Origin: Macrostomum hystrix
Taxonomy: Eukaryota > Animalia > Platyhelminthes
Assembly (NCBI GenBank): GCA_950097015.1
Contig: CATNEN010000001.1
Location: forward strand, 16,430,001 to 16,494,000
Direction: 5' to 3'
Length of the DNA stretch: 64,000 nt
Positions 2,390-57,331 of the stretch are shown here, in pieces; within the stretch, counting starts at the first letter, position 1, and each line of letters opens with the position of its first letter. The notes under the pieces are model-generated. The model saw nothing but the letters and a program-made list of their open reading frames with translations, made no database searches and was not told the origin of the DNA. The translations under genes were made by a program, and so were the position numbers.

Positions 2390-2645
2390 ATGAAAATTAT
2401 AAATAACTTTTATGGAAGCCCGGTTGGACGCCGCCGTCGCCGTGGAGGGCAAAAGGGAAAGAAAAATAGTAAGTTTTTTATTTTGCCGATTTTTGTTTTA
2501 TGTGATCCGCAAGCTTATTTGCATTGAGGTATAACTGTTCATGTTATTTTTCTCTTACTCAACAGTTACCTGCTACCTTTGTGCCGGGCCGCATCCGGTC
2601 CGCCGTTGCCCGGAGCTGGCTGAGCAACGGCAGCAGCAGCGGCAG

Positions 2646-2681
<36 letters not shown>

Positions 2682-2693
2682 GAAAAGCAGTAG
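2390..2693 (+). CDS. Small Arg-rich / CX2CX3HX4C zinc-knuckle / polyQ protein, copy 1 (exons 2390-2468 and 2566-2693, 68 aa; not in the ORF track)
   Basis: Spliced translation MKIINNFYGSPVGRRRRRGGQKGKKN-I-TCYLCAGPHPVRRCPELAEQRQQQ... with a 97-nt GTAAG...CAACAG intron. Homologous to the ORFs at 10778, 37414 and 56966. The TAG lies inside the CAG run and may be a premature stop. Confidence 0.75.
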
Positions 2694-3240
2694 CAGCAGC
2701 AGCAACAGCTGTTCTGACTTGGGCGCGGTCTGAATAAAGAAGAAGAAGAAGAAGAAGCAGCAGCAGTACCTAATTTTTTCAAAGGCACTGCCATTTATTA
2801 ACTTTATTAATAATATTAATATTTTTAATATTACTTTAATATTAATAAATAAATATTAATAAATAATAAATCTATTAATAATAAATAATAAATAATAATA
2901 TATAAATATTATTTATTAGCTTGCGACAATATTTTGAGTTATTCTCTTTTGTCATTTACCATACAAAGCTAGACAGTTCATTGTCCAAATATAGACTTAT
3001 TTGGTGCTGATTCAGATGCTTCTGCAGAGTTTGCCACCAGCAAGACCAGAAACCCTGCACAGTTTGATCAAATGGATATATTCTCAGGTGTCAGTCTTTC
3101 TGCTTGCTGGCTTCAAGTCCGCATGGAAGATTGAATTTGAGAAGTCAACTAGCAAGTTTTGCCCCCCTTCGGGGAGCAGAAATACTTTTAATTCATCTAG
3201 TATATACTTTTAGCAGCTGAATTTACAGCTTTTTAAAGCT

Positions 3241-4620
3241 ACAATGAACCCCCAGTTGACAATGATCCCCCAGTTGACAATGATCCCCCAGTTGACAATG
3301 AACCCCCAGTTGACAACGATCCCCCAGTTGACAATGATCCCCCAGTTGACAATGATCCCCCAGTTGATGATGATCCCCCAGTTGAAAATGATCCCCCAGT
3401 TGACAATGATCCCCCAGTTGAGAATGATCCCCCAGTTGACAATGATCCCAAAGTTAACAAAGATCCCCCAGTTCACAATGATCCCCCAGTTGATGAAGTC
3501 TCCCCATTGATGATGATCCCCAGTTAACAATGTTCCTCCAGTTGACAATGTTCCCCCAGTTGACAATGATCCCCCAGTTGATGATGATCACCCAGTTGAC
3601 AATGATCCCCCAGTTGACAATGATCCCCCAGTTGACAATGATCCCCCAGTTGACAATGATCCCCCAGTTGATGATGATCCCCCAGTTGAAAATGATCCCC
3701 CAGTTGACAATGATCCCCCAGTTAACAAAGATCCCCCAGTTCACAATGATCCCCCAGTTGATGAAGTCTCCCCATTGATGATGATCCCCAGTTAACAATG
3801 TTCCTCTAGTTGACAATGTTCCCCCAGTTGACAATGATCCCCCGGTTGATGATGATCACCCAGTTGACAATGATCCCCCAGTTGACAATGATCCCCCAGT
3901 TGACAATGATCCCCCAGTTGACAATGATCCCCCAGATGACAATGATACCCCAGTTGACAATGATACCCCAGTTGACAATGATACCCCCCTTGACAATGAT
4001 ACCCCAGTTGACAATGATACCCCAGTTGACAATGATCCCCCAGTTGGCCATGATCCCCCAGTTGACAATGATACCCCAGTTGACAATGATACCCCAGTTG
4101 ACAATGATACCCCAGTTGACAATGATACCCCAGTTGACAATGATCCCCCAGTTGGCCATGATCCCCCAGTTGACAATGATCCCCCACTTGACAATGATCA
4201 CCCAGTTGACAAAGATCCCCCAGTTGATGATGATCCCCAGTTGATGATGATTCCCCAATTGACAATTATCCCCTAGTTGACCATTACCCCCCAGTTGACA
4301 ATGATCCCCCAGTTCACAATGATCCCCCAGTTGACAATGATCCCCCAGTTGACAATGATCCCACAGTTGACAATGATCCCCCAGTTGACAAAGATCCCCC
4401 AGTTGATGATGATCCCCAGTTGATGATGATTCCCCAATTGACAATTATCCCCTAGTTGACCATTACCCCCTAGTTGACAATGATCCCCCAATTCACAACG
4501 ATCCCCCAGTTGACAATGATCCCCCAGTTGACAATTATCCCCCAGTTTACCTAGATCCTCCAGTTGACGATTATCCCCCAGTTTACCTTGATCCCCATTT
4601 TGATGATGACTCCCCGTTTG
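3241..4620. repeat. 18-bp minisatellite (ACAATGATCCCCCAGTTG)n
   Basis: Direct tandem periodicity; source of the spurious TMIPQL/NWGIIV ORFs. Confidence 0.97.
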
Positions 4621-4644
4621 ACGTTGATTTTTCAAACGCTGTGT

Positions 4645-5372
4645 TAGCCAAGATTCAAACTCAGGTTTCGCCATGTTTTAAACCCTGGTGGGCTATGATT
4701 CAAACTCTCGTTTTACCATGATTCAAACTCTAATTTAGCCATGATTCAAACTCTGTTTTAGCCATGATTTAAACTCTGGTGTAGCCATGATTCAAACTCT
4801 GGTTTCGCCTTGATTCAAATTTAGCCATGATTCAGACTCTAGGTTTGCCATGATTCAAACGTTGGTTTAGCCATGATTCAGACTCTGGTTTAGCCATGAT
4901 TCAAACTCTGGTTTCGCCTTGATTCAAATTTAGCCATGATTCAGACTCTGGTTTAGCCATGATTCAGACTCTGGTTTAGCCATGATTCAGACTCTGGTTT
5001 AGCCATGATTCAAACTCTGGTTTAGCCATGATTCAAACTCTGGTTTAGCCATGATTCGGACTCTGGTTTAGCCATGATTTAAACTCTGGTTTAGCCATGA
5101 TTCAGACTCTGGTTTTGCCATGATTCAGACTCTGGTTTAGCCATGATTCAGACTCTGGTTTAGCCATGATTCAGACTCTGGTTTAGCCATGATTCAGACT
5201 CTGGTTTAGCCATGATTCAGACTCTGGTTTAGCCATGATTTAAACTCTGGTTTAGCCATGATTCAGACTCTGGTTTAGCCATGATTCAAACTCTGGTTTA
5301 GCCATAATTCAAACTCTGGTTTAGCCATGATTCGGACTCTGGTTTAGCCATGATTCAAACTCTGGTTTAGCC
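4645..5372. repeat. 23-bp minisatellite (TAGCCATGATTCAGACTCTGGTT)n, Helitron 5'-subterminal
   Basis: Tandem 23-mers about 620 bp inside the 5' TC end. The same repeat occurs at 25430-26350 and 38330-38830. Confidence 0.95.
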
Positions 5373-7734
5373 GATGTGCTATGATTTATGATATTTTATT
5401 TACGAAATGAAAAAAAATAATATAAAATAGTCTTCAATCACTACTGGCTGAAAATTAGTCTAAATGATTTGACGCAGTGCAGAATCGAACCCTAGCCTAG
5501 CCTAACCTATTCCTAGTGCCTACACATCGGCTATTCCGACTGTTGGTTAGTGGGTGCAAAAATCAGCCTTATAAAATGAATTCTCAAAGTTCTGGCTTTG
5601 TACAATGAAGTAAGAAAATAGAGTACACTTAGTCTCGCGGTTGGTTGTGTACATTTATTTCCAATTTGTCTCCAGAGTGCAGGCTTCAAATTCAATCAGC
5701 TAGGGGTTGTTGCGCAATTTTACGATGCAATTCTAATTCAGCGGCAGTGAGTAAAGTTCTCAATAAGCCAAGATGGTTTGACCTTTGAAAAATCATGTTT
5801 TTCGAATGTTTAATCCCTTTAGCAATAAATTTAAGCTTAATAAAAATTTGTGTATAATTGTCCCCATATTTGGCATCTTTTGGTGAAGAAATGGTGAAAA
5901 TCAGTTGAGCCGTTCGGGAGAAAATCAATTACAACCAACCAACCAACCAACCAACCAACCAACCAAGCGTTTCATTTTTAGTATAGTGGACTAGCAAGTT
6001 TTGCCCCCCTTCGGGGAGCAGAAATAATTAATATTCGTCTAATATATACCTTTTAGCAGGAGTACATTAAGTGTCTTTCTTAAGCTTAAGGTTAAAATAT
6101 GAATTTTTGGAGATCGTTAATAACGCATTTTAGGTAAAACAAAACTATAAACTTTTTACAGTTTTATAGTTTAGAGCTCTGTATATGTCAACGTGTTTGA
6201 TAAAAATATCTTATTTATTTTATTCATAAATCTGTTAAGAGCACTTTTTTACTTAAAATACTTAAAATAAATTAAATGTTATTCCAAGAATTTGCGACTT
6301 TCCGAGAAATGACTTGCTTTATTCCGATTTTCTTGTTGCTTGTATTGCTCATGTGTACTACAGTTTTATACACATCCCGAGAAATTTTTTACTTTCTTCA
6401 TTTGTAAGTGAATTTCTTAGCCCTGCTCATCGTACTAACTGCGACTGCAATGTTCCGAACAATAAGTAGCTCAGCATTGCAACTATTGCCCTTGATTGAG
6501 GCAATAAATGACTTAAAGAGTCAGTTCAATGCAGCTATCTCATTGTGAATGGACTTTGCAAAAGCAACTGGAGCTACATCCTTCGACCTTTGGTTTGACA
6601 CTTTAAATAAAGCTAACATAGGCTATATATAGGCATGATATATGATATATATTATCATGCTAAATTCCCCCTTTCTTTTCTAGTCGCACTCCTCAGCAGA
6701 CTTCTCTTTTCTTATATGCCTCATACACATTGTCAAATCTTATTTTTAATCAAATCCTATATGACATAAAAGTCTATTTCAAATTAGATCCCGTTTTGAT
6801 AGTTCAAAATGGTTAGCTAATATCAATGGCTAATTAAGTATCAATGGAATGGATCAATTTCTAATCTCCTTTCTTTTTCTTAATGATTCCAGTTCTGATC
6901 AGATCCTATTTCTTATCTGACCTCTTTTCTTAGTAATCCATTTTGTATCATTCTTCATTATAAATGCATGCCTGACAATTTATCTTTTAAAATAGAATAA
7001 GGCAGGTACCAGGTGTGCAGATTCATGAATCATGGGACTGGTCTTTGTCCACTGAAACATTTTTTGTATTTCTTCAATTGCAAAACACATTGAAAACAAC
7101 AAAACAACAACAATTGAGTGAGCATCTGACAAATTTATTATTATACAAATACATATCATTATGACGTTATAAGAAAACAAACTCCAAATGTAGAGAATTC
7201 AGTTCAATGAAAAAAGAAAAAATTGCATTGCACCTAAAAATATTACCCACAAACAGTAAACATGATGAACTTGCAGAAGGCTCCGCCAACAAGACAGTAT
7301 CATTGCACAGTTCATTGCATTTGACTGCAAGAATAATGGTGTCAATCCTACTGCTTGTTGGCTTGCTTTACTCTGCACTGCTGGTCAGAGGCATTCACTG
7401 GGGCAAGTTAAGTTCACGCACTCAACGTCACACAAAAAGCTTAGCTATCACAAGAGTCTCTAGGTTTGCTGAAGCTGCTTCAAACCTCTCATGGCTGCAT
7501 ACCCTCAGTTTTAGAGTGGAAGAACCTCTGAATCGTGAAAAAGCAGCGAACACGTTATTTCAACCACAATCTCAAGGCCCATTGATATGCAGCCAACCTG
7601 CTATATATTCACCTAATATTTACCTACATTAATTTCACTATTACTTATTAACTTTCATGGCACAACTAAATTGGGATCCGATTGTATCCGATCCTATTCT
7701 GGCTTGCCTTGATCCCAATCTAGTTATTTAGGAT

Positions 7735-8215
7735 TTAGGATTGGGATCTAAGAGATTCTATGAATTTAGGATTGGGATATAAGAGATTCTATGAATTTAG
7801 GATTGGGATATAAGAGATTCTATGAATTTAGGATTGGGATCTAAGAGATTCTGTGAATTTAGGATTGGGATTCAAGAGATTCTATGAACTTAGGATTGGA
7901 ATCTAAGAGATTCTGTGAATTTAGCATTGGGATCTAAGAGATTCTGTGAATTTAGGATTGGGATCTAAGAGATTCTGTGAATTTAGGATTGGGATCTAAG
8001 AGATTCTGTGAATTTAGGATTGGGATCTAAGAGATTCTGTGAATTTAGGATTGGGATCTAAGAGATTCTATGAATTTAGGATTGGGATCTAAGAGATTCT
8101 ATGAATTTAGGATTGGGATCTAAGAGATTCTGTGAATTTAGGATTGGGATCTAAGAGATTCTGTGAATTTAGGATTGGGATCTAAGAGATTCTGTGAGTT
8201 TAGGATTGGGATCTG
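7735..8215. repeat. 31-bp minisatellite (GAATTTAGGATTGGGATCTAAGAGATTCT(A/G)T)n, short array
   Basis: About 15 copies, with the same unit and the same right flank as the 13220-18472 array. Confidence 0.95.
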
Positions 8216-8529
8216 TTATGCTCAGTTCTGTTATGCCACAAACACAATTTAGCTAAGCAACGATCTCAGTTCTGTTATGCAATGAACCCAATTTAGCTAA
8301 TCATTTTGCCTAGGTAATCCCTGATCTCAATTCCATTATGATCCCATCTAATTTGAATTTATTAGGTGAATAAATCAGGATTTGCCTGATATGTCTCAGC
8401 GGGCCATTTACATATCAGGATAAACTACTTGTGATCACTATTAAACACAGATACCAATGCGACACTGGCAGACAAACATGTACACAAGCAATACTCACGT
8501 TAATTGCATCTTCATTAGTCTTTCAAGTC

Positions 8530-9923
8530 TTACTCGTCCATGTAATCATGTGATGGTCCAGGCTTCTCGGACACATTGGGCGCCTTAGGGGTTGACATAG
8601 CCGGTATCTGCTGACTCCTGTAGATTTGATCTCGAGAAAAAGTCACCTGTGAAAGGAAATTTATATATACCTAATTAATTTTTTTTATTATTGTTTTTTA
8701 AATGCATAAACGTAATCTTTAGAGACAAAAGGCCTCATCGAACCAGTTAATAATGAATCTAAGCAGTCAATCACTTAATGCTTCTTTAGTAGGTTCTCTG
8801 ACATCATGTTACTATTTAACCCACACGAAATAAAATTAACTTACCTCTTTGTCCCCAAATCGCACTCTAATTCTTCGCACCTCATCGAATTGGTTGAACA
8901 TTCGCTCTGGGTACTGCAATACCATTTCGTCGTCACGGATAGCATTTTTCTCCCGCTGGGAGCTTTGCGTCACGCGTAGCTCCTCGAAGCACTGTTGGCT
9001 AGAAACCGCATCCTTGTACCACTGGGTAATGTCGGAGACATCAGCAGAGTCTTCTGGCCAATGCTGAATTTCCGCTTTCGAACATCCGAGACTGATTGTC
9101 TGAGAATATTCCTGGACTTGAGCACCATGAATCGCTAGAACGTCGCCCACAGACCAGTCATTCACTTGGGCAGAAGAGCTGGACCAAAATGTGCACGACA
9201 CGGAGGACCCAGACTGATCAACAAGCGTCACTTTCGCCAGGTTGACAAGTTTTCCGGAACCGGTTTTAACTTCCGTTGGTTTCTGGACAGCAGAAATCGT
9301 GCCATAGACGTTAACATTCCTGAGATATGTGAGGCAAAGGGTGAATTTACAAGAATGCATTAACTCATTCACTAAGCAACTTCACTGACTGATTTAAATA
9401 AGTTTTCCTAGAAATAATTGGCTAACCTAACAATTAGTGCGAATATATATTCCAAATCCTTACCATTTATTTTTAACAATTGCAACAAGTTAACTTACAT
9501 TTTCATTTCACAGTCCGAAATCTCTTTTATCTTCTTATAGCCCGGTGCACGTCGAGTGACGGTCTCGAGGGTCCTCACAATGGTTCCACTTTGGTCAATT
9601 GAAACTGTTAGCTCGTGCTCATTGTCCGTAGTGCTGTACCTGGGATCCGCCTTCTTCACCCAGCCGCCGGATATGCGGACGGCGACGCCCTCACGACACA
9701 CCTCCAGGAAAGGCTTAAGATCCTTTCCGAACACGCTTACACGTATATCGCCGGTGTCGTCACAGAGGATAAAGGAAAACACTTGGCCTGGTCCTCTTTT
9801 GCCTTCAAAGTCCTTGATTTTGGACAGCCTCATTACGAGGCCAACGATTGCAGCGTGCATCAGGCCCGGAAGCAGAGCAGAGATACACGCTTTGCTTTTC
9901 TTGGCTCCTTCGGTTGACTCCAT
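8530..9923 (-). CDS. RPA70-like two-OB-fold ssDNA-binding protein, copy 2, apparently intact (exons 9923-9499, 9319-8845, 8646-8530; 338 aa)
   Basis: GQVFSFILCDDTGDIRVSVFG and LVDQSGSSVSCTFW motifs. Canonical GTAAG/CAG splice sites give an uninterrupted frame ending ...HDYMDE*. Confidence 0.88.
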
Positions 9924-10777
9924 ATTGCTCGATTGATAGTTGTCAAAAATATGGATTATAAAAATTTCACTGATAAGGTCTTTACGGCTTGTGGTTTGAT
10001 AGTTTTAGCATCAAGGCCAATTGTGCCTGTCTATATTGCAGCATTTCGGACAACCCCAACTGTGATGACTCATGCCAATAGAGGGTGCCATGTAAAGATC
10101 AATAATTAGATCTGGCTAACCAATCAGAAAGTGTTTTGTTCTAACATTTCTAATCCACCCACTGGGCTACTTGTTGTGGATTGCCTTAGCCTTTACGTTC
10201 TTTCTTTATGTACAGTGTGGGGTGTCAAAGTCGAGTGTGGTGCGACTTGTTATGTAATCTGTTTTCGACACACTTCATTCAATAATAGGACACCAAAAAC
10301 ATCTTATATCTACAGTGTTATTGGGGTGCAAGTGCGGCGTGTGGCTAGATTGTGGCTAAAAATAGAGGGTTTCAAGTCAGCCAATAGCAGTTGACTGCAT
10401 TCAATAAAAGTTATTTCATTAAAGTGCCACCGCAAGCCCCAACCTAGCGAGACTTTTCAGTAATCATCACAAACAGCTAAAGCCTCATGAAGCTCACCAA
10501 TGAAGCCTTACCCGATTTTAACTGGAGTTGGGGTGGCCCTAAGCTGGAATTCATTTTTGACCAATAAGAAACGGGCTTTAATAAAAATGAAATGAGTTTC
10601 GTTTGGTTTGCAAGGCTTTCAAACCAATCTCGCTAATCCTTGCTTCGCATGAGTGAGCGTATATAAATAAACCAGAGCCTAAAATCTGAAATCTAACCTA
10701 AAATCAAGCACTATACAACGCTTACAACGTTTACAAAGTTTATTACAACGCTATACGCTAAGTTCGCTTTCGCTAAC

Positions 10778-11116
10778 ATGAAGTTTACGCAAAACGTCTT
10801 CTCCGGCGGCGACAGGCGGCGAGGCCGAAGTGGAGGCCAGCGCAGACCTATGGCCTGCTATCTCTGCGCGGGACCACACCCTGTGGCCCGCTGTCCTGTC
10901 GTCGCCGGAGTGCGGCAGCAGCAGCAGCCGCAGCAGCAGCAGCAGCAATTAGAGCAGCAACAGCTTGAGAGACTACAACATGCAACTATGCTGCGACTGC
11001 AGCAGCAGCAGCAGCTCCAGAACCAGCAGCAGCTCCAGAACCAGCAGCAGCTGCAGAACCAGCAGCAGCTCCAGAACCAGCAGCAGCTCCAGAACCAGCA
11101 GCAGCAGCAAAAATAA
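10778..11116 (+). CDS. Small Arg-rich / zinc-knuckle / polyQ protein, copy 2 (112 aa)
   Basis: MKFTQNVFSGGDRRRGRSGG..CYLCAGPHPVARC..(QQQLQN)n, with TATAAATA at about 10662. Divergent from the RPA gene. Confidence 0.78.
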   Translation: MKFTQNVFSGGDRRRGRSGGQRRPMACYLCAGPHPVARCPVVAGVRQQQQPQQQQQQLEQQQLERLQHATMLRLQQQQQLQNQQQLQNQQQLQNQQQLQNQQQLQNQQQQQK

Positions 11117-12559
11117 TATTTACTTAATAAATACTTGATAAATTACTCGATAAATAAATTATATCACTTACTGGACAAATAAAAGTTTCGTGTTGCCTTC
11201 TCTTATTTCTTACTGTAAATGAGAAACTTAATTGACACAGCTCATTGAAATGATCAATTTTGAACCTAAAAATGTATAGCCATGATTCAAACTCTTTTTT
11301 TGGCATGATTCAAACTCAGATTTGCTATGATTTATGATATTGTATTTACGAAATGAAAAAATAAATTAAAATAATCTTCAATCACTACTGACTTAAATGA
11401 CTTAAAAGAGTCAGTTCAATGCAGCTATCTCATTGTGAATGGACTTTGCAAAAGCAACTGGAGCTACATCATTCGACCTTTGGTTTGACACTTTTAATAA
11501 AGCTAACATAGGCTATATATAGGCATGATATATGATATATATTATCATGCTAAATTCCCCCTTTCTTCTCTAGTCGCACTCCTCAGCAGACTTCTCTTTT
11601 CTTATATGCCTCAAACACATTGTCAAATCTTATTTTGAATCAAATCCTATATGACATAAAAGTCTTTTTCAAATTAGATCCCATTTTGATAGTTCAAAAT
11701 GGTTAGCTAATATCAATGGCTAATTAAGTATCAATGGAATGGATCAATTTCTAATCTCCTTTCTTTTTCTTAATGATTCCAGTTCTGATCAGATCCTATT
11801 TCTCATCTGACCTCTTTTCTTAGTAATCCATTTTGTATCATTCTTCAATATTAAATGCATGCCTGACAATTTATCTTTTAAAATAGAATAAGGCAGGTAC
11901 CAGGTGTGCAGATTCATGAATCATGGGACTGGTCTTTGTCCACTGAAACATTTTTTGTATTTCTTCAATTGCAAAACACATTGAAAACAACAAAACAACA
12001 ACAATTGAGTGAGCATCTGACAAATTTATTATTATACAAATACATATCATTATGACGTTATAAGAAAACAAACTCCAAATGTAGAGAATTCAGTTCAATG
12101 AAAAAAGAAAAAATTGCATTGCACCTAAAAATATTACCCACAAACAGTAAACATGATGAACTTGCAGAAGGCTCCGCCAACAAGACAGTATCATTGCACA
12201 GTTCATTGCATTTGACTGCAAGAATAATGGTGTCAATCCTACTGCTTGTTGGCTTGCTTTACTCTGCACTGCTGGTCAGAGGCATTCACTGGGGCAAGTT
12301 AAATTCACGCACTCAACGTCACACAAAAAGCTTAGCTATCACAAGTCTCTAGGTTTGCTGAAGCTGCTTCAAACCTCTCAATGGCTGCATACCCTCAGTT
12401 TTAGAGTGGAAGAACCTCTGAATCGTGAAAAAGCAGCGAACACGTTATTTCAACCACAATCTCAAGGCCCATTGATATGCAGCCAACCTGCTATATATTC
12501 ACCTAATATTTACCTACATTAATTTCACTATTACTTATTAACTTTCATGGCACAACTAA

Positions 12560-13220
12560 ATTGGGATCCGATTGTATCCGATCCTATTCTGGTTTGCCTT
12601 GATCCCAATCTAGTTATGCAATGATCTCAATCTAGTTATGTGAGGATCTCAATTTAGTTATGCAATAATCCCATTTTAGTTACGCCAAAAGATCCCAATT
12701 TAGCTAAGCAATGATCTCAGTTCTATTATGCAATGAACCCAATTTAGCTAAGCAATGATCTCAGTTCTGTTACGCCACAAACAAAATTTAGCTAAGCAAT
12801 GATCTCAGTTCTGTTATGCTATGAACCCAATTTAGCTATTGGGTTGGGAACCCAATTGGCTATTGGGAACCCAATCCGATCCTATTCTGGTTTGCCTTGA
12901 TCCCAACTCGTAGCAGAAAATTTTCATTACCTTACGGACGCCCCTCTTACTAATCATAATTCTGGTAAACAATGAATCCAATTTTCCATTCTTCAATGAT
13001 CCCATTCGTATCATGCCATGAGCCCAATTTCATTATGCGATAATTCCAATTCTGGTTTGCTATGATCCCAATTTAGTATGCAAGGATCCCAACTTAGTTA
13101 TGCCAAATGATCCCAATTACGCTAAGCAATGATCTCACTTCTGTTATGCCACAAACACAATTTAGCTAAGCAATGATCTCACTTCTGTTATGCCACAAAC
13201 ACAATTTAGCTAAGCAATGA
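12560..13220. repeat. Degenerate ~20-bp repeats (AATGATCCCAATTTAGYTA-like)
   Basis: Recurrent GATCCCAAT/GATCTCAGTT cores; also at 8215-8360 and 18472-18610. Confidence 0.7.
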
Positions 13221-16200
13221 TTTAGGATTGATATATAAGATTCTGTGCATTTAGGATTGGGATCTAAGAGATTCTATGAATTCAGGATTGGGATCTAAGA
13301 GATTCTATGAATTTAGGATTGGGATCTAAGAGATTCTATGAATTTAGGATTGGGATCTAAGAGATTCTCTGAATTTAGCATTGGGATCTAAGAGATTCTG
13401 TGAATTTAGGATTGGGATCTAAGAGATTCTGTGAATTTAGGATTGGGATCTAAGAGATCCCATGAATTTAGGATTGGGATCTAAGAGATTCTATGAATTT
13501 AGGATTGGGATCTAAGAGATTCTATGAATTTAGGATTGGGATATAAGAGATTCTATGAATTTAGGATTGGGATCTAAGAGATTCTGTGAATTTAGGATTG
13601 GGATTCAAGAGATTCTATGAATTTATGATTGGGATCTAAGAGATTCTATGAATTTAGGATTGGGATCTAAGAGATTCTGTGAATTTAGGATTGGGATACA
13701 AGAGATTCTATGAATTTATGATTGGGATCTCAGAGATTCTATGAATTTAGGATTGGGATCTAAGAGATTCTGTGAATTTAGGATTGGGATCTAAGAGATT
13801 CTGTGAATTTAGGATTGGGATCTAAGAGATCTCATGAATTTAGGATTGGGATCTAAGAGATTCTATGAATTTAGGATTGGGATATAAGAGATTCTATGAA
13901 TTTAGGATTGGGATATAAGAGATTCTATGAATTTAGGATTGGGATCTAAAAGATTCTGTGAATTTAGGATTGGGATTCAAGAGATTCTATGAACTTAGGA
14001 TTGGAATCTAAGAGATTCTGTGAATTTAGCATTGGGATCTAAGAGATTCTGTGAATTTAGGATTGGGATCTAAGAGATTCTGTGAATTTAGGATTGGGAT
14101 CTAAGAGATTCTGTGAATTTAGGATTGGGATCTAAGAGATTCTATGAATTTAGGATTGGGATCTAAGAGATTCTATGAATTTAGGATTGGGATCTAAGAG
14201 ATTCTGTGAATTTAGGATTGGGATCTAAGAGATTCTATGAATTTAGGATTGTGATATAAGAGATTCTGTGAATTTAGGATTGGGATCTAAGAGATTCTAT
14301 GAATTTAGGATTGGGATATAAGAGATTCTCTGAATTTAGCATTGGGATCTAAGAGATTCTGTGAATTTAGGATTGGGATTCAAGAGATTCTATGAATTTA
14401 TGATTGGGATCTAAGAGATTCTATGAATTTAGGATTGGGATCTAAGAGATTCTGTGAATTTAGGATTGGGATACAAGAGATTCTATGAATTTATGATTGG
14501 GATCTCAGAGATTCTATGAATTTAGGATTGGGATCTAAGAGATTCTGTGAATTTAGGATTGGGATCTAAGAGATTCTGTGAATTTAGGATTGGGATCTAA
14601 GAGATCTCATGAATTTAGGATTGGGATCTAAGAGATTCTATGAATTTAGGATTGGGATATAAGAGATTCTATGAATTTAGGATTGGGATATAAGAGATTC
14701 TATGAATTTAGGATTGGGATCTAAAAGATTCTGTGAATTTAGGATTGGGATTCAAGAGATTCTATGAACTTAGGATTGGAATCTAAGAGATTCTGTGAAT
14801 TTAGCATTGGGATCTAAGAGATTCTGTGAATTTAGGATTGGGATCTAAGAGATTCTGTGAATTTAGGATTGGGATCTAAGAGATTCTGTGAATTTAGGAT
14901 TGGGATCTAAGAGATTCTATGAATTTAGGATTGGGATCTAAGAGATTCTATGAATTTAGGATTGGGATCTAAGAGATTCTGTGAATTTAGGATTGGGATC
15001 TAAGAGATTCTATGAATTTAGGATTGTGATATAAGAGATTCTGTGAATTTAGGATTGGGATCTAAGAGATTCTATGAATTTAGGATTGGGATATAAGAGA
15101 TTCTCTGAATTTAGCATTGGGATCTAAGAGATTCTGTGAATTTAGGATTGGGATCTAAGAGATTCTGTGAATTTAGGATTGGGATCTAAGAGATTCTATG
15201 AATTTAGGATTGGGATCTAAGAGATTCAATGAATTTAGGATTGGGATCTAAGAGATTCTGTGAATTTAGGATTGGGATCTAAGAGATTCAATGAATTTAG
15301 GATTGGGATCTAAGAGATTCTATGAGATTAGGATTGGGATCTCAGAGATTCAATGAATTTAGGATTGGGATATAAGAGATTCTATGAATTTAGCATTGGG
15401 ATCTAAGAGATTCAATGAACTTAGGATTGGGATATAAGAGATTCTATGAATTTAGGATTGGGATCTAAGAGATTCTGTGAATTTAGGATTGGGATCTAAG
15501 AGATTCTGTGAATTTAGGATTGGGATCTAAGAGATTCTATGAATTTAGGATTGGGATCTATGAGATTCTATGAATTTAGGATTGGGATATAAGAGATTCT
15601 ATGAATTTAGGATTGGGATCTAAGAGATTCTGTGAATTTAGGATTGGGATCTAAGAGATTCTGTGAATTTAGGATTGGGATCTAAGAGATTCTATGAATT
15701 TAGCATTGGGATCTAAGAGATTCTATGAATTTAGGATTGGGATATAAGAGATTCTATGAATTTTGAATTGGGATCTAAGAGATCCCATGAATTTAGGATT
15801 GGGATTCAAGAGATTCTATGAATTTAGGATTGGGATCTAAGAGATTCAATGAATTTAGGATTGGGATCTAAGAGATTCTATGAGATTAGGATTGGGATCT
15901 CAGAGATTCAATGAACTTAGGATTGGGATCTAAGAGATTCTGTGAATTTAGGATTGGGATTCAAGAGATTCTATGAATTTATGATTGGGATCTAAGAGAT
16001 TCTATGAATTTAGGATTGGGATCTAAGAGATTCTGTGAATTTAGGATTGGGATACAAGAGATTCTATGAATTTATGATTGGGATCTCAGAGATTCTATGA
16101 ATTTAGGATTGGGATCTAAGAGATTCTGTGAATTTAGGATTGGGATCTAAGAGATTCTGTGAATTTAGGATTGGGATCTAAGAGATCTCATGAATTTAGG

Positions 16201-18472
16201 ATTGGGATCTAAGAGATTCTATGAATTTAGGATTGGGATATAAGAGATTCTATGAATTTAGGATTGGGATATAAGAGATTCTATGAATTTTGGATTGGGA
16301 TCTAAAAGATTCTGTGAATTTAGGATTGGGATTCAAGAGATTCTATGAACTTAGGATTGGAATCTAAGAGATTCTGTGAATTTAGCATTGGGATCTAAGA
16401 GATTCTGTGAATTTAGGATTGGGATCTAAGAGATTCTGTGAATTTAGGATTGGGATCTAAGAGATTCTGTGAATTTAGGATTGGGATCTAAGAGATTCTA
16501 TGAATTTAGGATTGGGATCTAAGAGATTCTATGAATTTAGGATTGGGATCTAAGAGATTCTGTGAATTTAGGATTGGGATCTAAGAGATTCTATGAATTT
16601 AGGATTGTGATATAAGAGATTCTGTGAATTTAGGATTGGGATCTAAGAGATTCTATGAATTTAGGATTGGGATATAAGAGATTCTCTGAATTTAGCATTG
16701 GGATCTAAGAGATTCTGTGAATTTAGGATTGGGATCTAAGAGATTCTGTGAATTTAGGATTGGGATCTAAGAGATTCTATGAATTTAGGATTGGGATCTA
16801 AGAGATTCAATGAATTTAGGATTGGGATCTAAGAGATTCTGTGAATTTAGGATTGGGATCTAAGAGATTCAATGAATTTAGGATTGGGATCTAAGAGATT
16901 CTATGAGATTAGGATTGGGATCTCAGAGATTCAATGAATTTAGGATTGGGATATAAGAGATTCTATGAATTTAGCATTGGGATCTAAGAGATTCAATGAA
17001 CTTAGGATTGGGATATAAGAGATTCTATGAATTTAGGATTGGGATCTAAGAGATTCTGTGAATTTAGGATTGGGATCTAAGAGATTCTGTGAATTTAGGA
17101 TTGGGATCTAAGAGATTCTATGAATTTAGGATTGGGATCTATGAGATTCTATGAATTTAGGATTGGGATATAAGAGATTCTATGAATTTAGGATTGGGAT
17201 CTAAGAGATTCTGTGAATTTAGGATTGGGATCTAAGAGATTCTGTGAATTTAGGATTGGGATCTAAGAGATTCTATGAATTTAGCATTGGGATCTAAGAG
17301 ATTCTATGAATTTAGGATTGGGATATAAGAGATTCTATGAATTTTGGATTGGGATCTAAGAGATCCCATGAATTTAGGATTGGGATTCAAGAGATTCTAT
17401 GAATTTAGGATTGGGATCTAAGAGATTCAATGAATTTAGGATTGGGATCTAAGAGATTCTATGAGATTAGGATTGGGATCTCAGAGATTCAATGAACTTA
17501 GGATTGGGATCTAAGAGATTCTGTGAATTTAGCATTGGGATATAAGAGATTCTGTGAATTTAGGATTGGGATCTAGGAGATTCTATGAATTTAGCATTGG
17601 GATCTAAGAGATTCCATGAACTTAGGATTGGGATCTAAGAGATTCAATGAACTTAGGATTGGAATCTAAGAGATTCTGTGAATTTAGCATTGGGATCTAA
17701 GAGATTCTGTGAATTTAGGATTGGGATCTAGGAGATTCTATGAATTTAGGATTGGGATCTAAGAGATTCTATGAATTTAGGATTGGGATCTAAGAGATTC
17801 TGTGAATTTAGGATTGGGATCTAGGAGATTCTATGAATTTAGGATTGGGATCTAAGAGATTCTATGAATTTAGGATTGGGATCTAAGAGATTCTGTGAAT
17901 TTAGGATTGGGATCTAAGAGATTCTGTGAATTTAGGATTGGGATCTAAGAGATTCTATGAGATTAGGATTGGGATCTCAGAGATTCAATGAACTTAGGAT
18001 TGGGATCTAAGAGATTCTGTGAATTTAGCATTGGGATCTAAGAGATTCTGTGAATTTAGGATTGGGATCTAGGAGATTCTATGAATTTAGCATTGGGATC
18101 TAAGAGATTCCATGAACTTAGGATTGGGATCTAAGAGATTCAATGAACTTAGGATTGGAATCTAAGAGATTCTGTGAATTTAGCATTGGGATCTAAGAGA
18201 TTCTGTGAATTTAGGATTGGGATCTAGGAGATTCTATGAATTTAGGTTTGGGATCTAAGAGATTCTATGAATTTAGGATTGGGATCTAAGAGATTCTGTG
18301 AATTTAGGATTGGGATCTAGGAGATTCTATGAATTTAGGATTGGGATCTAAGAGATTCTATGAATTTAGGATTGGGATCTAAGAGATTCTGTGAATTTAG
18401 GATTGGGATCTAAGAGATTCTGTGAATTTAGGATTGGGATCTAAGAGATTCTGTGAGTTTAGGATTGGGATC
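13220..18472. repeat. 31-bp minisatellite, ~5.25 kb (~170 copies) with higher-order duplications
   Basis: 31-bp period. Variant monomers recur at 775, 1581 and 496 bp (25, 51 and 16 monomers). Confidence 0.97.
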
Positions 18473-18777
18473 TGTTATGCTCAGTTCTGTTATGCCACAA
18501 ACACAATTTAGCTAAGCAACGATCTCAGTTCTGTTATGCAATGAACCCAATTTAGCTAATCATTTTGCCTAGGTAATCCCTGATCTCAATTCCATTATGA
18601 TCCCATCTAATTTGAATTTATTAGGTGAATAAAGCAGGATTTGCCTGATATGTCTCAGCGGGCCATTTACATATCAGGATAAACTACTTGTGATCACTAT
18701 TAAACACAGATACCAATGCGACACTCACAGACAAAATGACACAAGTAATACTCACTTCAATGACGCCTGGAAATCGC

Positions 18778-35898: not shown

Positions 35899-36130
35899 TG
35901 TAACACGCGGTGTTTGGCGGTGTGAAACCAGATTCTACGAAGGCCCCGTGAGGCCGTGCTTGCTGTATTTATGTCAGTTGCGATTACGTAATCAGCGATG
36001 TACAGTAAATGAAAGATGTTAAACGAACGAACAGTAAATACGATAGAATGATTCAGCAAGTTATTAGAAATATTCCTACAATGTTACCATTCAAAAACTG
36101 TCTCAAAGGCCAGGAATAAAAACCATTACA
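35899..36130 (-). repeat. Gypsy 5' LTR (232 bp)
   Basis: TGTAA...TTACA inverted ends, bounded by the PBS and by resumption of the RPA intron. Confidence 0.82.
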
Positions 36131-36183
36131 TATATTCCAAATCCTTTCCATTTATTTTTAACAATTGCAACAAGCAAACTTAC

Positions 36184-39439: not shown

Positions 39440-40197
39440 CTAGCAAGTTTTGCCCCCCTTTGGGAGCCTTATTCAGTACTTTAAAGTGAAAATAATACGA
39501 AAATAATAATGTTCTCTACTTAAAATAGGAATTTTTGGAGATCGTTAATAACGCATTTTAGGTAAAACAAAACTATTAACTGTTTTACAGTTTCTTTTTT
39601 AGAGCCAATTTATGTCAACGTTTTTGATAAAATGATCTTACTAATTTTATACATAAAATTGTTTAGAGCACTTTTTATAGTTGTTACTGAAAATGAAATT
39701 AATGAAATTTATTCCAAGAAATTCCTACTATCCGAGAAATGACTTGCTTTATTCCGATTTTCTTGTTGCTTGGATTGCTCATGTGTACTACAGTTTTATA
39801 CACATCCAGACAAATTTTGACTTTCTTCATTTGTAAGTAAATTTCTAAGCCCTGCTCATCGTACTAACTGCGACTGCAATGTTCCGAACAATAAGTAGCT
39901 CAGCATTGCAACTATTGCCATTGAATGAGGCCCCTCTTATTATAATAAATGACTTAAAGAGTCAGTTCAATGCAGCTATCTCATTGTGAATGGACTTTGC
40001 AAAAGCAACTGGAGCTACATCCTTCGACCTTTGGTTTGTCGCTTTTAATAAAGCTAACACTGGCTATATATAGCTATGATATATGATATATATTATCATA
40101 CTAAATTCCCCGACCCCCTCTCTTTTCTAGTCACACTCCTCAGCAGACTTCTCTTTTCTTTTTTGCCTCATTCACATTGTCAAATCTTATTTTGAAT
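39440..40197 (-). mobile_element. Helitron 3'-terminal segment abutting the next unit's 5' end
   Basis: CTAG at 39440-39443 with a weakened hairpin. Homologous to 5991-6750. No matching 5' end was found. Confidence 0.85.
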
Positions 40198-51464: not shown

Positions 51465-52324
51465 CTAACCCGGATCTGCTGCTGCAGCATCCCGATCAGC
51501 TGGGCGAATTGATGCAGAATTAGTTGCAGATTCAGCAGCAGCAGATTCAGCAGCAGCAACCGTACCAGCAGTACCAAAACTGAAACTGAAACCTAAATTC
51601 ATTTACTTCATAATATCGAATATACTAAAAATGAAATGGTTGCTTGCTTGCTTGTAATTGATTTTCTCCCGAACGGCTCAACCGATTTTCACCATTTCTT
51701 CACCAAAATATGCGAAATATGGGGACAATTTTACACGTATTTTTATTAAGCTTAACTTCATTGTTAAGGGGATTAAATATTCGAAAAACTGTTTTAGATA
51801 GGATTTTTAATGCATTACATCAGAGCCAGTTTTGTCAATGTGCGTTCCGCTGCCAATTTTAATGATTGCATCAGGGCCAGTTTTGTTAATAGTGAGTACA
51901 CTGATAAGAATTTCACTGTGTCAAATGTACATAGCTATGTCAACCCCACTGGCGAGACAGTCAGTGCGAATTTATAAATAGATTACATCACAGCTTTTCT
52001 CACCCGTGTGTGTGTGTGTGTGTTTGATTTGAATAGGTAAAATGTGCATAGCAGACTTCAATTCAACGATATATTGAGACATCTACTCCTTTCTCAAATC
52101 TTTAATCTTAATCTTTAAATCATCAAATCTTTACCAAATCTTCATCAAATCTTAAATGTCCAACAGTCGAAATTCGACTAGCTTGTGTAAAACGACACTT
52201 ACTATCCACCTGACCGGTCTGTGAGTCGACCTCGACGGCCGAAACCGTTAGGGCGGCGAGCCCGACAGCTCCCAGAAGCAGTAGCAATAGCCACGATGAC
52301 AGTCGCATTCTATTTTTTAATGTC

Positions 52325-52919
52325 CTACAGTTTTCTACATGTGTTTACCAGTATTCTAAATGTGTTTACCAGTATTCTAAATGTGTTTAACAGTATTCTA
52401 AATGTGTTTACCAGTATTCTAAATGTGTTTATCAGTATTCTAAATGTGTTTACCAGTATTCTAAATGTGTTTACCAGTATTCTAAATGTGTTTAACAGTT
52501 TTCGAAATATGTTTACCAGTATTCTAAATGTGTTTAACAGTTTTCTAAATGTGTTTACCAGTTTTATAAATGTGTTTGCTAGTATTCTAAATGTGTTTAC
52601 CAGTATTCTAAATGTGTTTAACAGTTTTCTAAAAGTGTTTACCAGTATTCTAAATGTGTTTACCAGTATTCTAAATGTGTTTACCAGTATTCTAAATGTG
52701 TTTACCAGTATTCTAAAAGTGTTTATCAGTATTCTAAATGTTTTTACCAGTATTCTAAATGTTTTTAACAGTATTCTAAACGTGTTTACCAGTATTCTAA
52801 AAGTGTTTACCAGTATTCTAAATGTCTTTACCAGTATTCTAAATGTTTACCAGTATTCTAAATGTGTTTACCAGTATTCTAAATATGTTTGCCAGTATTC
52901 TAAATGTGTTTACCAGTAT
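52325..52919. repeat. 21-bp minisatellite (GTGTTTACCAGTATTCTAAAT)n
   Basis: About 28 copies, ~710 bp inside the 5' TC end; source of the spurious VFTSILN ORF. Confidence 0.95.
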
Positions 52920-55900
52920 CACATCACAACATGGGGCCGCTGCTTGCCGACACCTCAGCCGTGCCGCATGGCTGGCAGGTGTACTTCATGGACCGCGAGC
53001 TGGAAAGCCGCCTGAGCCTCAGCCAGAAGGTGAAGCCGCAGCTGCTGGAGCTGCTGCAAACTGTACTGCACGAGTGCAACGGCTATGTGCAGAGCCTGCG
53101 AGCTGCTGCTCAGCGGATCAGTGGCGACCCTGAGCTGGGAGATGCGCGAATTGTGATTCACCCGGACCGAAGACCAGCTGGGGAACACATTCGGTGAGTG
53201 AGCTGTGTTATGGAGCTGCTCTTTGGGATAAACCTGGGATAAATCTGTTGCATTATGTGAAATACCTGCGGCACCAATTCAATTTCCTGTTCAATCCCAG
53301 GCGTTACAATCTCCCTACTGCCAATGAGGTTGGCATCCTGGTTGTCGGTGGTTCCGAGGACGCACCGACAAGTCGTGACGTTGTGATCCGACTGCGCGGA
53401 GGCGAAGTTTAGCGCATTTCCGAGACGCACCGGTCCTATGACCCTCTGGAGTACGTGCTGCTGTTCCCGAATGGCGAGGACGGTTGGCACCCGGAGCTGC
53501 AGATGGCGAATGGGCGGAAGCTGACGCCCATGAAGTACTACGCCAGCGAAATCATGGTGAGAGGTGGCCAGTTTAACGTGCTGCATTACAGCAGGCGCCT
53601 CTTCCAGCAGTACCTGGTAGACATGGCTGCCAAGATCGAGTCCGAGAGGCTGCTGTACCTGCGCACTCATCAGAACGATTTGCGCAGCGAGACATACAGC
53701 GGCCTACGAGACACTCTGTTCGCTGCTGATGGCAGGAGCACCGAGAGAGACCCCAATGAGATTGGTAAGCCTGCCCATGTGTACCTGTCTTCCAGCTTTG
53801 TTGGTGGACCCAGGTACCTGATGGAGCGACTGCAGGATGCAATGGCCTACGTGCACAAGTTCGGCAAGCCGGACCTGTTTGTCACAGCCACGTGCAACCC
53901 GAAGTGGCCGGAAATCAGCGTGCAGCTGCTGCCCGGTCAGCGGGCTGAGGACCGCCCGGACATTGTGACTCGAGTCTTTGAGCTGAAGAAAAAGGCTCTG
54001 CTTGAAGTGCTCAGGAAGCGCTTTGGCAAGGAGGCTGCGCATGTGTGCTCCTTGGAGTACCAGAAGCGCGGTGAGTGAAAGCAGATTTTCATACAGTATT
54101 GACAACCTGGATTAACAAATTCATGGACTTTTTGCCAACTCGCCTCAGGCCTTCCCCATGTGCACTTCCTGCTCTGGCTGGCGAACGGGAGTCGAGTCAC
54201 CCCGGATCGCTACGATGCCAACGTGTCTGCGGAGATCCCAGACCCACAGCGGCAGCCAGTGCTGCACGAGCTGGTCAAGACCAACATGATCCACGGGCCG
54301 TGTGGCGAGCTGAACCCGGCCTGCCCTTGCATGGAGAACGGCAAGTGCAGCAAGAGCTTCCCGAAGGACTTCCAGCCGGTGACGCTGACGAGCGACAGTG
54401 GCTATCCGTTCTACAGGAGGCGCTCCCCTGAGATGGGAGGCTTCACGGTGGACAAACTGTTCAAGGGTCGCAGCATCCGAATGGACAACAGGTGAGTCAG
54501 TAGCTGCGTGGCCATAGTGTTTCTGTGCTCTGCAAGCCGCTTCTTCCGTCCAATCACCAGGTGGGTGGTGCCATACAACCCTGACCTGCTGCTCCAGTTC
54601 GCGTGCCATTTGAACGTTGAAGTTTGCGCCACTGTCAAGTCTGTGAAGTACGTGATCAAGAACTTAATGAAGAATGGCGACATGGCTGTTTTCAAAGTCG
54701 CTGCCACCGCAGGAGCTGCTGAATCTCAGCCGAGTGCTCCTCCTGAGAGGCAGGCGAAGTCACGGGATGAAATATCCGAGTACCTGTCTGCACGCTACAT
54801 TGGTCCGATGGAAGCTGTAAACACCATCCTGGCCTTTGAGGTAATTGCTCTGCTGTGATGTAGCTGTGATTTTAGCACTGAATTTAGTCTTGGCGGTCAC
54901 TCTGATGCTCAAAAAATATACTCACCTTTGCCCAGGTGCACAACAGGTTTCCGGCGGTCATCCGACTTTGCGTGCACAAGACGGAAGAGCAGCTTGTGTA
55001 CTTCAACGAGCAGACCGCGGGCGACAGAGCAAAGGTGCCACGAGACTCGACACTGACGGCCTTCTTCAAGCTGTGCCGCACTGACGAGTTTGCCCGCCTG
55101 CTGCTCTACACAGAGGTGCCCGGCTACTTCGTGTGGCACCCGAGTGCGAGAGAGTGGCGTCGAGCCAAGCAGGGCGCCAATGTCGAAGGACATCCCGGCG
55201 TGAAGCGCAACACCAACATTGCGCGGATGTACACGGTCAGTCCCAGGGCTGGTGACCTGTACTACCTGCGGCTGTTGCTGCTGCACGTGCGAGGACCGAC
55301 CAGCTTCGAGTCGCTGCAGACCGTGGCCGGCGTGCTTTGTGCCAGCGACAAGGCCGCCTGCATGGCTCTCGGCTTGCTGCAGCGCGATGATCACTGGCAT
55401 CGCTGCATGATTGAGGCTGTCCAGAGCCGAATGCCGCGAGCTCTGAGGCACCTGCTGGCTGTCGTCCTCATCTGGGGCGAGCCAGACGACGGCGCTGATC
55501 TGTGGAGCAGCTTTGCAGAGGATCTCTGCGAAGACCTGCGCTTCCACCACCCGGACCTGAGCGCCGAGGAAGTCAGTGACCTGGCTCTGCGGGAGCTGCA
55601 GAGCATGCTGACGTCAATGGGCGGCCGCAGTCTGCAAGAGTACGGACTGCCTGCTGCCTCTGCAATGCCGCAAGTCGGGCCGCTGCAGTTTGACACGGTC
55701 GAACAGGCGGAGATCACCGAGATGCGGCTGCCAATGCTCACGGCCGAGCAGATGGCCACCTACGAGGCTGTGACTGCGGATCTTGTCGCTGGCTCGGGCG
55801 GCCTGCATTTCCTTGACGCTCCTGCAGGCACTGGCAAGACCTTCCTGCTGGAGGTTTTGCTGGCGTTTGTGCGGAGTCGAGGGGAAGTCGCCCTGGCTGT

Positions 55901-56765
55901 TGCGTCGTCTGGAATCGCAGCCACCCTGCTGCCGGGTGGACAGACGGCACATTCAACGTGAGTTTTCTGGTGGAACTGGAATGCCTTTTTCGTGTTCTAC
56001 CCAGACCATTCAGTCCCCATCAATATTTTTGTTAGGTTCAAGATCCCAGTGCAGCTGGTTCGCTCTGACAAGGACGTGTGTTCTATCCGAGCGCAGTCTA
56101 AACAGGCCGCAGTCTTTCGCACTGTGCGGCTGATCGTATGGGACGAGATCTCCATGACAAACCGCAAGGACCTGGAGGCTGTCGACCGCAGTCTGCGAGA
56201 CCTGCGGAAGCAGGACTGCCCATTCGACGGAATCGTCGTGGTGTGCTCTGGAGACTTTCGCCAGCTGCTGCCGGTGGTGAAAAATGGCACACGCGCTAAC
56301 AACATCCTGGCGTGTGTGAGCAAGTCCCCGCTGTGGTCTTTGTTTCAGAGGCACCGCCTTTCCAAGAACATCCGGCTGCAGAGTTGTGCTGATGCTGAGC
56401 TGTACCATCGCTATATGCAGCTGCTCATGCAGGTAAGTTTTGCTATTGCTGCTTGTAGGAGTAGATCACATGTGTAGCCTGCGATTCTCTTGCATTTTCC
56501 TGCCCATTCCACACAGATTGGCTCTGGGTTGGCTGATCAGTCGGATGACACCGTCCGCCTTCCTGCCGAGATTGTCATTTCGGCGGAGGCGCCGCTATCC
56601 GAGCTGATCCGGTTCGTGTACCCTTCGTTCGAGGCGTCAGAGGAGCGCGATAGCTACTTTGCCAGCCGAGCCATCCTGGCGCCCTACAACGATGCGGTTG
56701 ACGCGATCAACAACGAGTGCCTGGCCATGTTCCCAGGCCAACTGCGCGAGTATCGCTCGGTGGCT
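52920..56765 (+). pseudogene. Helitron RepHel copy C, truncated at both ends (exons ..53193, 53301-54070, 54149-54491, 54561-54840, 54936-55957, 56036-56432, 56517..)
   Basis: Same intron positions as copy A. Stop at 53410-53412. Rep motif 3 is KYVIKN instead of KYVIKY. The helicase breaks off after EYRSV. Confidence 0.93.
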
Positions 56766-56965
56766 GAGCTGGATTGGAATGGTAGAATATGCAATACGGA
56801 ATATATCTGGAAAATTCCAGAAACGAGTAAGCCCCTTAAAACCCGTGAGTCTAGCGCAGACATGCTGAACTGGTATTTAAAGTTGAAAGTTTCATACCCA
56901 AGACTAGAGAGACAGACGATCAACAGCAACAACAGAACAGCAGCATTCAACAGAACAACAGAGAA

Positions 56966-57331
56966 ATGCATATCAACAATTACTTCAACAGCGGCGGGCC
57001 AGGGCGAGGCGGCCGACGTCGCACCGGACCCCGGGGCGGTCCAGCCGCTGGATGTTATTTCTGCGGTGGGCCGCACCGGGTCATCCGGTGCGACCGTATG
57101 AGGGCTCTCGGCCTGGCCCTCCAGCAGCAGGAGCAGCAGCCGCCACCGCAGCAGCAGCAGCCGGCACCGCAGCAGCAGCAGCCGCCACCGCAGCGGCAGC
57201 AGCAGCAGCCGGCAACGCAGCAGCAGCATCAAGAGCGGAATATAACAGCCGCGGTTGCCCGGATGGGCCTGACGGCCGAAACAGTTCCGCCGCCTCCACC
57301 GCCGCCGCCGGCTGCCGGAAGGAAGAAATGA
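56966..57331 (+). CDS. Small Arg/Gly-rich / zinc-knuckle / polyQ-P protein, copy 4 (121 aa)
   Basis: MHINNYFNSGGPGRGGRRR..CYFCGGPHRVIRC..QQQPPPQQQ. Confidence 0.78.
   Translation: MHINNYFNSGGPGRGGRRRTGPRGGPAAGCYFCGGPHRVIRCDRMRALGLALQQQEQQPPPQQQQPAPQQQQPPPQRQQQQPATQQQHQERNITAAVARMGLTAETVPPPPPPPPAAGRKK

Follow-up and report, generated by a model that had tools for sequence, protein, structure and literature searches.

Small zinc-knuckle open reading frames beside RPA-like genes in Helitrons of Macrostomum hystrix: a probable accessory gene

We analysed a 64,000-nucleotide stretch of DNA from the flatworm Macrostomum hystrix (assembly GCA_950097015.1, contig CATNEN010000001.1, positions 16,430,001 to 16,494,000 of the forward strand; hereafter the window), in which four loci, c1 to c4, form a genuine family of small open reading frames (ORFs) tied to Helitrons. 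The gene that they represent, here called the knuckle gene, is probably a real accessory gene of these transposons. On a fuller reading, to which we give an even chance, c1-c4 would all derive from a single small gene, transcribed by RNA polymerase II, that resides in canonical Helitrons and encodes a nucleocapsid-like product.

All four ORFs are read on the forward strand, as a first-pass annotation of this DNA had placed them and as reading of the sequence confirmed, and they share one layout: an initiator Met, an Arg/Gly arm, a CX2CX3HX4C knuckle and a Q-rich tail. Their consensus runs from Met-(K/H)(I/F) through a short N/Q/aromatic stretch and the Arg/Gly arm to C(Y/F)(L/F)C(A/G)GP(H)xVxRC, with an aromatic residue after the first knuckle Cys, and then to the tail; the predicted proteins are 70-121 residues long. 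Copy c2 (10778-11116) encodes 112 residues with a basic arm, the knuckle CYLCAGPHPVARC and a (QQQLQN)n tail, c3 (37414-37626) 70 residues with a degenerate knuckle (CFLCAGPQTVARC), and c4 (56966-57331) 121 residues with a basic arm, the knuckle CYFCGGPHRVIRC and a Q/P-rich tail. The last part of the c4 ORF, stop included, is present twice because of a tandem duplication of 77 bp (57283-57436). Copy c1 is split into two exons. The first (2390-2468) holds the Met, the N-terminal motif and an Arg/Gly/Lys arm in 26 codons plus 1 base, and the second (2566-2693) the knuckle CYLCAGPHPVRRC, the Q-rich tail and a TAG stop. Between them lies a 97-nt canonical GT-AG intron in phase 1 (2469-2565), read directly from the sequence as GTAAGT, a pyrimidine tract and CAG. 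Its removal restores the frame exactly; the unspliced ORF stops after 45 residues and has the knuckle out of frame. As the first-pass annotation had claimed, c2-c4 are free of this intron.

We built a family profile from the N-terminus and knuckle (approximately the first 45 residues) and scored every six-frame ORF in the window with it, 2,027 in total; throughout, the two c1 exons were searched, aligned and counted separately. The four loci scored 83-93 bits (37.9 and 45.4 bits for c1 exons 1 and 2) and the next ORF 10.5 bits, from which we conclude that the window contains no fifth copy. Single-sequence phmmer searches linked c1 exon 2 to c2 (E ~5e-8), c3 to c4 (E ~1e-6 to 9e-6) and c2 to c4 (E ~9e-6 to 6e-5). 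The shared pattern that had been proposed is real, apart from the broken knuckle of c3 (Gln for His). The low DNA similarity claimed alongside it applies to c1, c2/c3 and c4, which show no mutual blastn match, but not to the c2/c3 pair, whose backbone is 97-98% identical.

CAG-type repeats keep long frames open on both strands at all four loci, raising the question of whether GC-rich DNA with CAG repeats could yield such ORFs by itself, the Cys/His pattern being a coincidence. A six-frame search with the regular expression C..C...H....C matched only c1, c2, c4 and one unrelated site. The latter, CFECPGSHPIEFC at 63210-63248 on the reverse strand, was rejected as a chance match: it scores 10.5 bits and has neither basic arm nor Q tail. 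Because of the rarity of this pattern, the gap in profile score (83-93 versus 10.5 bits) and the strong asymmetry between synonymous and non-synonymous changes described below, an origin by chance is effectively refuted.

Every knuckle ORF adjoins an RPA-like gene (4/4 copies). The partner of c1 (522-1521, reverse strand) has two exons and a GT-AG intron at a conserved position; that of c2 (8839-9923, reverse strand) has two exons and a REPA_OB_2 domain; that of c3 is represented by exon 1 (36183-36608, reverse strand) in a locus cut off at 36130. In these three copies the pair is divergent, the two ATGs lying 868 bp apart at c1, 854 bp at c2 and 805 bp at c3, which agrees with the head-to-head distance of 0.8-0.9 kb given in the first-pass annotation. 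By contrast, c4 stands in tandem with the RepHel and RPA-like genes on the same strand rather than head-to-head, its two-exon partner lying downstream (58985-60112, forward strand). The further claim that all four copies are antisense to their host element therefore fails at c4. An (ACAG)85 microsatellite (58170-58511) separates c4 from its RPA-like gene.

The RPA-like genes beside c1, c2 and c4 carry their intron at the same position, with GT-AG sites. At the amino acid level the c1 and c2 partners are 51-53% identical and the c4 partner is 35-50% identical to the others; the c2 and c3 partners share 97.6% identity in exon 1. The knuckle family comprises three to four lineages whose age matches that of the split between their RPA-like partners (35-53% amino acid identity). 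As a database query, RPA-like exon 1 of c4 returned no match. The knuckle gene is tightly linked to the RPA-like gene, not to RepHel, and the c3 element clearly lacks RepHel.

The host elements are canonical Helitrons (HLE1) by their RepHel genes, TC and CTAG ends, 3′ hairpin and insertion between A and T. Pfam detected Helitron_like_N (E 1e-45 to 1e-46) together with PIF1 (E 1e-18 to 1e-34) at 18778-24423 on the reverse and 52191-56763 on the forward strand, as well as RPA-type OB folds and a third RepHel fragment (29300-31217, reverse strand). Aligning short repeated blocks gave a common 5′ end, TC-nnn-TATACTAAAAATGAA, and a common 3′ end consisting of a hairpin with an 8-bp GC stem, 11 nt and then CTAG. 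By exact search the 3′ end occurs four times (3149, 5991 and 39440 on the reverse strand, 61856 on the forward; 0.03 expected by chance), and so does the 5′ end (5990, 26938 and 39439 on the reverse strand, 51616 on the forward). With the flanking base, the 5′ ends at 51616 and 26938 read A|TC, and the 3′ ends at 61856 and 3149 read CTAG|T.

These ends delimit the elements that carry the knuckle gene to different extents. Element E_D (51616-61856, forward strand) runs from A|TC through 21-bp repeats, RepHel, c4, the ACAG microsatellite and the RPA-like gene to the hairpin and CTAG|T. Element E_A (5991-26938, reverse strand) begins with TC at 26938, a 23-bp satellite, RepHel (24423-18778) and a 31-bp satellite, and continues with c2 in antisense, the RPA-like gene, a second 31-bp array, the hairpin and CTAG at 5991. 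Element E_C (36130-39439, reverse strand) starts with TC at 39439, a 23-bp satellite, antisense c3 and RPA-like exon 1, and is truncated at 36130. The linkage to Helitron termini, a point raised by the first-pass annotation and checked here in the window, is thus complete for c2 and c4, which lie between both ends, and partial for c3, which lies downstream of a 5′ end. It stops short of c1: the nearby element E_B (3149-5990, reverse strand) is non-autonomous and made of repeats only, c1 is outside it, with its stop 456 bp from the CTAG end at 3149, and the ends of an element of its own were looked for in the window and not found.

That the c1 unit is not placed between Helitron ends, and that E_C has no RepHel, is also what one would see if the knuckle and RPA-like genes were host genes, possibly domesticated, within a transposon-rich region. 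Four copies in 64 kb belonging to three or four divergent lineages, the position of c2 and c4 between matching Helitron ends and of c3 downstream of a 5′ end, and the placement of an RPA-like gene after RepHel, a known feature of Helitrons (PMC11417382, PMC4683698), all speak against such a host gene pair, which we consider highly improbable.

To what extent the protein itself has been maintained can be judged from Nei-Gojobori counts over 44-46 codons threaded on the protein alignment, in which the counts for the c1 exons were kept apart and only summed. Between lineages, pS is 0.70-0.96, that is, saturated, versus a pN of 0.27-0.42 (Fisher p 5e-3 to 1e-10); for c2-c3, pS is 0.41 (Fisher p 0.043). 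This asymmetry fits purifying selection on the protein, and amino acid conservation alongside saturated synonymous sites argues for selection over passive decay. The suggestion in the first-pass annotation that motif conservation reflects selection at the level of the element finds support in these values. Its count of four divergent copies with the knuckle goes too far: c3 has a broken knuckle and a truncated RPA-like partner.

Decay of this kind would be expected if a fragment of a Gag nucleocapsid gene or of a host knuckle gene had been captured once by an ancestral Helitron and carried along since as slowly decaying relics. Capture of gene fragments is frequent in Helitrons (PMC11417382), and several features of the family would suit such passive cargo, among them the resemblance of the knuckle to Gag knuckles, the loss of the His ligand in c3 and of the upstream region in c4, and the lack of any external homologue with the full architecture. 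Relics are nevertheless hard to reconcile with a start codon, frame and knuckle that persist despite saturated synonymous sites and unalignable flanks, with a c1 intron whose removal restores the frame, or with a place beside the RPA-like gene that is kept in all four copies. We regard passive capture as quite unlikely.

A second alternative starts from the arrangement of the two genes. In three copies the knuckle gene and the RPA-like gene are divergent and keep a spacing of 805-868 bp, and inside E_A and E_C the knuckle gene is antisense, so that it could encode a Q-rich activator or repressor of the divergent promoter or a silencing antagonist, or could give rise to an antisense transcript, located between RepHel and the RPA-like gene, that acts as RNA. 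Q-rich tails are typical of transcription activation domains, which counts for a regulator; a single CCHC knuckle with a basic arm, however, is typical of single-strand binders and not of sequence-specific duplex-DNA binders, and the matches found for this knuckle are to those of eIF3g and Gag. Furthermore, conservation at the protein level argues against the RNA-level form, and antisense transcription is not a constant feature because c4 is in sense orientation. A regulatory function of one form or another seems rather unlikely to us.

Candidate gene signals flank three of the copies. Upstream of c1 is a TATA-like box, TATAAG (2299-2304), 91 nt before the ATG, and AATAAA (2733-2738) follows 40 nt past the stop. 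Copy c2 has a TATATAA box (10660-10666) 118 nt before its ATG, and c3 shares the c2 promoter (CATATAAA at about 37332, position -81). AATAAA occurs 10-40 nt past the stop in c1-c3, and c4 has GATAAA only. We give these signals modest weight, because TATA-like and AATAAA motifs are frequent in this DNA (~1.7 per kb per strand).

The c2 and c3 loci (9445-11300 and 36130-37800) are a mosaic. Their identity is 97-98% over 1.2 kb comprising RPA-like exon 1, the intergenic region and the promoter (9445-10640 in c2 coordinates). Starting at the TATA box (10660) and continuing across the 5′ untranslated region and ORF, identity falls to 52-89%, with 52-57% in the first three 60-nt windows past the TATA box, and it returns to 90% at 11184-11243. 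The pS of the ORF (0.41) is far above the divergence of the backbone. The simplest reading of this pattern is that the gene segment was exchanged between lineages, rather than faster protein evolution alone. That two elements so alike elsewhere should differ sharply only in the knuckle gene may be a trace of recombination, or of an arms race, centred on this gene.

A number of observations weigh against a functional knuckle gene. In c3 the zinc-ligand His is replaced by Gln (CAA, 37510-37512), leaving a full knuckle in 3/4 copies. Taken alone, exon 1 of c1 resembles the other copies only weakly (best E 0.006, to c3), which makes the N-terminal motif the weakest part of the pattern. Because c4 starts after a truncated helicase, its own upstream region has been lost; c4 has no evident promoter, and a TATTTAA there falls in possible remnant helicase codons. 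The selection estimate comes from an alignment of only ~45 codons, in which pN is biased downward because the loci were chosen by protein likeness. The Q-rich tails could reflect microsatellite growth rather than a selected feature. Finally, searches of 1.84 billion protein representatives, of JGI metagenome contigs and of viral contigs yielded no full-length homologue, and Pfam searches of the knuckle ORFs at E up to 10 returned noise only, with no model recognising them. Two of the copies are probably no longer functional, judging from their sequence: c3, with its His-to-Gln change and truncated partner gene, and c4, whose upstream region has been replaced by a truncated helicase ORF.

Clear homology of the E_D RepHel to the other two copies stops at 56763 ('...REYRSV'), without the Pif1 2B and UvrD_C parts, and c4 starts ~200 bp further on. 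A faint 'YLKLKV..P' is a possible 2B remnant, and a weak remnant may reach ~56924. We considered an inversion that would have carried the RepHel C-terminus behind c4 and rejected it, as no helicase remnant was found downstream of c4. The third RepHel fragment is 90-94% identical to the RepHel of E_D and keeps the C-terminus. The closest RepHel relative is 93% identical and comes from Logan assemblies; named matches, from ants, skates, plants and others, are at most ~50% identical.

Searches with the knuckle family beyond the window returned the knuckle and little else. When run against the 1.84 billion representatives, the profile (N-terminus plus knuckle) gave 10 matches, to the knuckle only, in plant-type retrotransposon Gag, multi-knuckle CNBP-like and similar proteins, and a word-index protein search with residues 1-50 of c2 gave no match. 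Ten ORFs of the window, looked up by exact sequence, were likewise missing from the collection. A scan of JGI metagenome contigs for CY[LF]C[AG]GPH found five loci (L001 to L005): two in Gag-Pol (L002, L003), one in a copia-like polyprotein (L004), one in an AT-rich sequence encoding an unassigned protein (L001) and one fragment (L005). The Gag-Pol and copia-like polyproteins carry Gly/Arg followed by CY(F/L)CGGPH, and 0/5 loci share the N-terminus or Q tail of the family or lie beside an RPA gene. In L001 (MDSY01044121.1, 10001-10045, 23.5% GC) the ORF starts MPKKKKKPIKCYFCGGPHEVRYCP, with a Lys arm and the same knuckle type, in an otherwise unrelated protein of ~225 residues encoded by very AT-rich DNA. 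The viral contig scan returned nothing.

Among solved structures, the profile is closest to the eIF3g zinc-binding domain (2MJC, E 5e-4). The 2-3-4 spacing CX2CX3HX4C, often followed by Pro, is present in c1, c2 and c4. We do not place the family in zf-CCHC PF00098, eIF3g or Gag, because the defining features of each were tested and found lacking. The spacing is CX2CX3HX4C as opposed to CX2CX4HX4C, and no Pfam match appears at E up to 10; proteins of 70-121 residues show no PF12353 or RRM match; and the ORF starts ~25 residues before the knuckle with no Gag domain, among RPA-like and RepHel neighbours. AlphaFold2, run on c2 with a small alignment, gives an N-terminus of low confidence and a knuckle of moderate confidence and predicts the tail confidently as one long helix, so that the modelled parts are a 13-residue knuckle and the polyQ helix; the Arg/Gly-rich arm is taken to be disordered. 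The tails contain 18-38% Gln and consist of different tandem repeats in each lineage.

What such a protein might do can be sketched by analogy. Of the functions suggested in the first-pass annotation, namely a nucleocapsid-like chaperone, a condensate former or a silencing antagonist, the type of knuckle favours the first indirectly, and it alone. Because of the known behaviour of retroviral nucleocapsid, CNBP and eIF3g-type knuckles, we infer that the knuckle protein would bind zinc and single-stranded nucleic acid, as retroelement nucleocapsid does, with the aromatic residue after the first Cys stacking on bases. Together with the RPA-like protein, it may act on the single-stranded DNA displaced during rolling-circle transposition, where it could coat or chaperone that DNA or aid formation of the 3′ hairpin; alternatively, its target might be RNA made by the element itself. 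The Q-rich tail would allow the protein to self-associate. RepHel has been enough, with no accessory gene, to reconstitute Helitron transposition. The most specific form of this proposal, a third functional Helitron gene whose nucleocapsid-like knuckle protein handles single-stranded DNA with the RPA-like protein and is exchanged between elements as a cassette, is one that we put forward tentatively and with more doubt than confidence. If it is correct, a DNA transposon has recruited the same type of nucleic-acid chaperone as retroelements, and the constant pairing of a nucleocapsid-like protein with an RPA-like gene would suggest that two proteins jointly manage the single-stranded DNA intermediate.

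The elements themselves are rich in repeats. Two head-to-tail junctions, CTAG|TC at 5989-5994 and 39438-39443 (reverse strand), have no host base between the abutting ends. In E_A, the 31-bp satellite downstream of RepHel (13220-18473) comprises 169 copies with 92% matches and a GC skew of ~+0.59, and the second array past the RPA-like gene (7733-8214) has 15 copies. Blocks flanking these arrays are duplicated, 6505-7727 matching 11394-12617 at 98.7% and 7735-8504 matching 17994-18761 at 96.6%. Because the order of block X, 31-bp satellite and block Y repeats internally, E_A is probably a RepHel unit fused with a knuckle-plus-RPA unit. The 2.8-kb E_B has the same ends as the coding elements and consists almost entirely of two repeats, one of 18 bp in 75 copies and one of 23 bp in 33 copies; the 23-bp repeat recurs near the 5′ ends of the other elements (25433-26364, 38331-38830).

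A further block of ~220-250 bp occurs at 26938-27155, 28347-28594 and 3013-3148. It flanks the E_A 5′ end and the E_B 3′ end, with a third copy downstream of the third RepHel fragment, and it is not a simple split target site because the two flanking copies overlap in content. At 34049-36059 (reverse strand, GC ~62%), the window holds a retrotransposon Gag with a canonical CX2CX4HX4C knuckle (CWNCNQRGHLARNC), followed by an aspartyl protease. The opposite strand of this Gag has weak RNase H and zf-RVT matches (33406-34581), and the region abuts the E_C truncation at 36130. Scans of the window for Rfam families and tRNAs came back empty.

The literature we searched describes no knuckle or Gag-like Helitron gene. 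Helitrons are known to carry RPA-like genes downstream of RepHel, and RepHel-less derivatives that keep the RPA gene are also known (PMC4683698, PMC6431247, PMC11417382), an example of a RepHel-less 'mother' element being rice Mothra (PMC4683698). The Pfam-based HELIANO census of 2024 lists 20 domains stably carried by Helitron-like elements, and the words 'CCHC' and 'knuckle' are absent from the main text of that paper (PMC11417382). This accords with the statement in the first-pass annotation that no described knuckle-polyQ accessory gene was known to it. Because no Pfam model detects it, the knuckle ORF would be invisible to a census of this type; more broadly, short genes for which no model exists escape surveys of transposon cargo that rely on Pfam. 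The knuckle ORF is probably a previously undescribed member of the Helitron accessory genes. Its CX2CX3HX4C spacing has precedents, being a reported CCHC variant in the second zinc finger of HERV-W Gag (PMC5016936) and occurring also in dinoflagellate helicases (PMC12787238).

The known system closest in setting is the RPA-like accessory gene of Helitrons. Like it, the knuckle gene is kept at a fixed place downstream of RepHel and inside the element ends, is also present in a RepHel-less derivative (E_C), and has a product that, by inference, probably handles single-stranded nucleic acid. Unlike it, the knuckle gene is a separate and far smaller gene without an OB fold, usually on the opposite strand. 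The nucleocapsid region of retroelement Gag shares with the knuckle ORFs a Gly/Arg-rich basic stretch directly before the CCHC knuckle and the aromatic residue after the first Cys, and the C-x2-C-x-G-P-H spacing is common to the knuckle ORFs and the metagenome polyproteins L002-L004. However, the knuckle ORFs lack both a capsid and a Retrotrans_gag domain, neither a protease nor a reverse transcriptase lies close by, and the predicted protein is free-standing, 70-121 residues long with its own Met and a Q-rich tail, in a DNA transposon. With eIF3g (2MJC; PF12353), they have in common the CX2CX3HX4C-P spacing after a Gly/Lys/Gln stretch; only ~23 residues align, the eIF3g N-terminal region and RRM are missing, and the resemblance may be convergent given so short a motif. 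CNBP-like proteins (P0001, P0006) are likewise small and rich in Gly, Arg and Lys, with CF.CGG.H....CP knuckles, but they have three or more knuckles, no Q-rich tail and no shared N-terminus, in contrast to the single knuckle of the Helitron-linked family described here.

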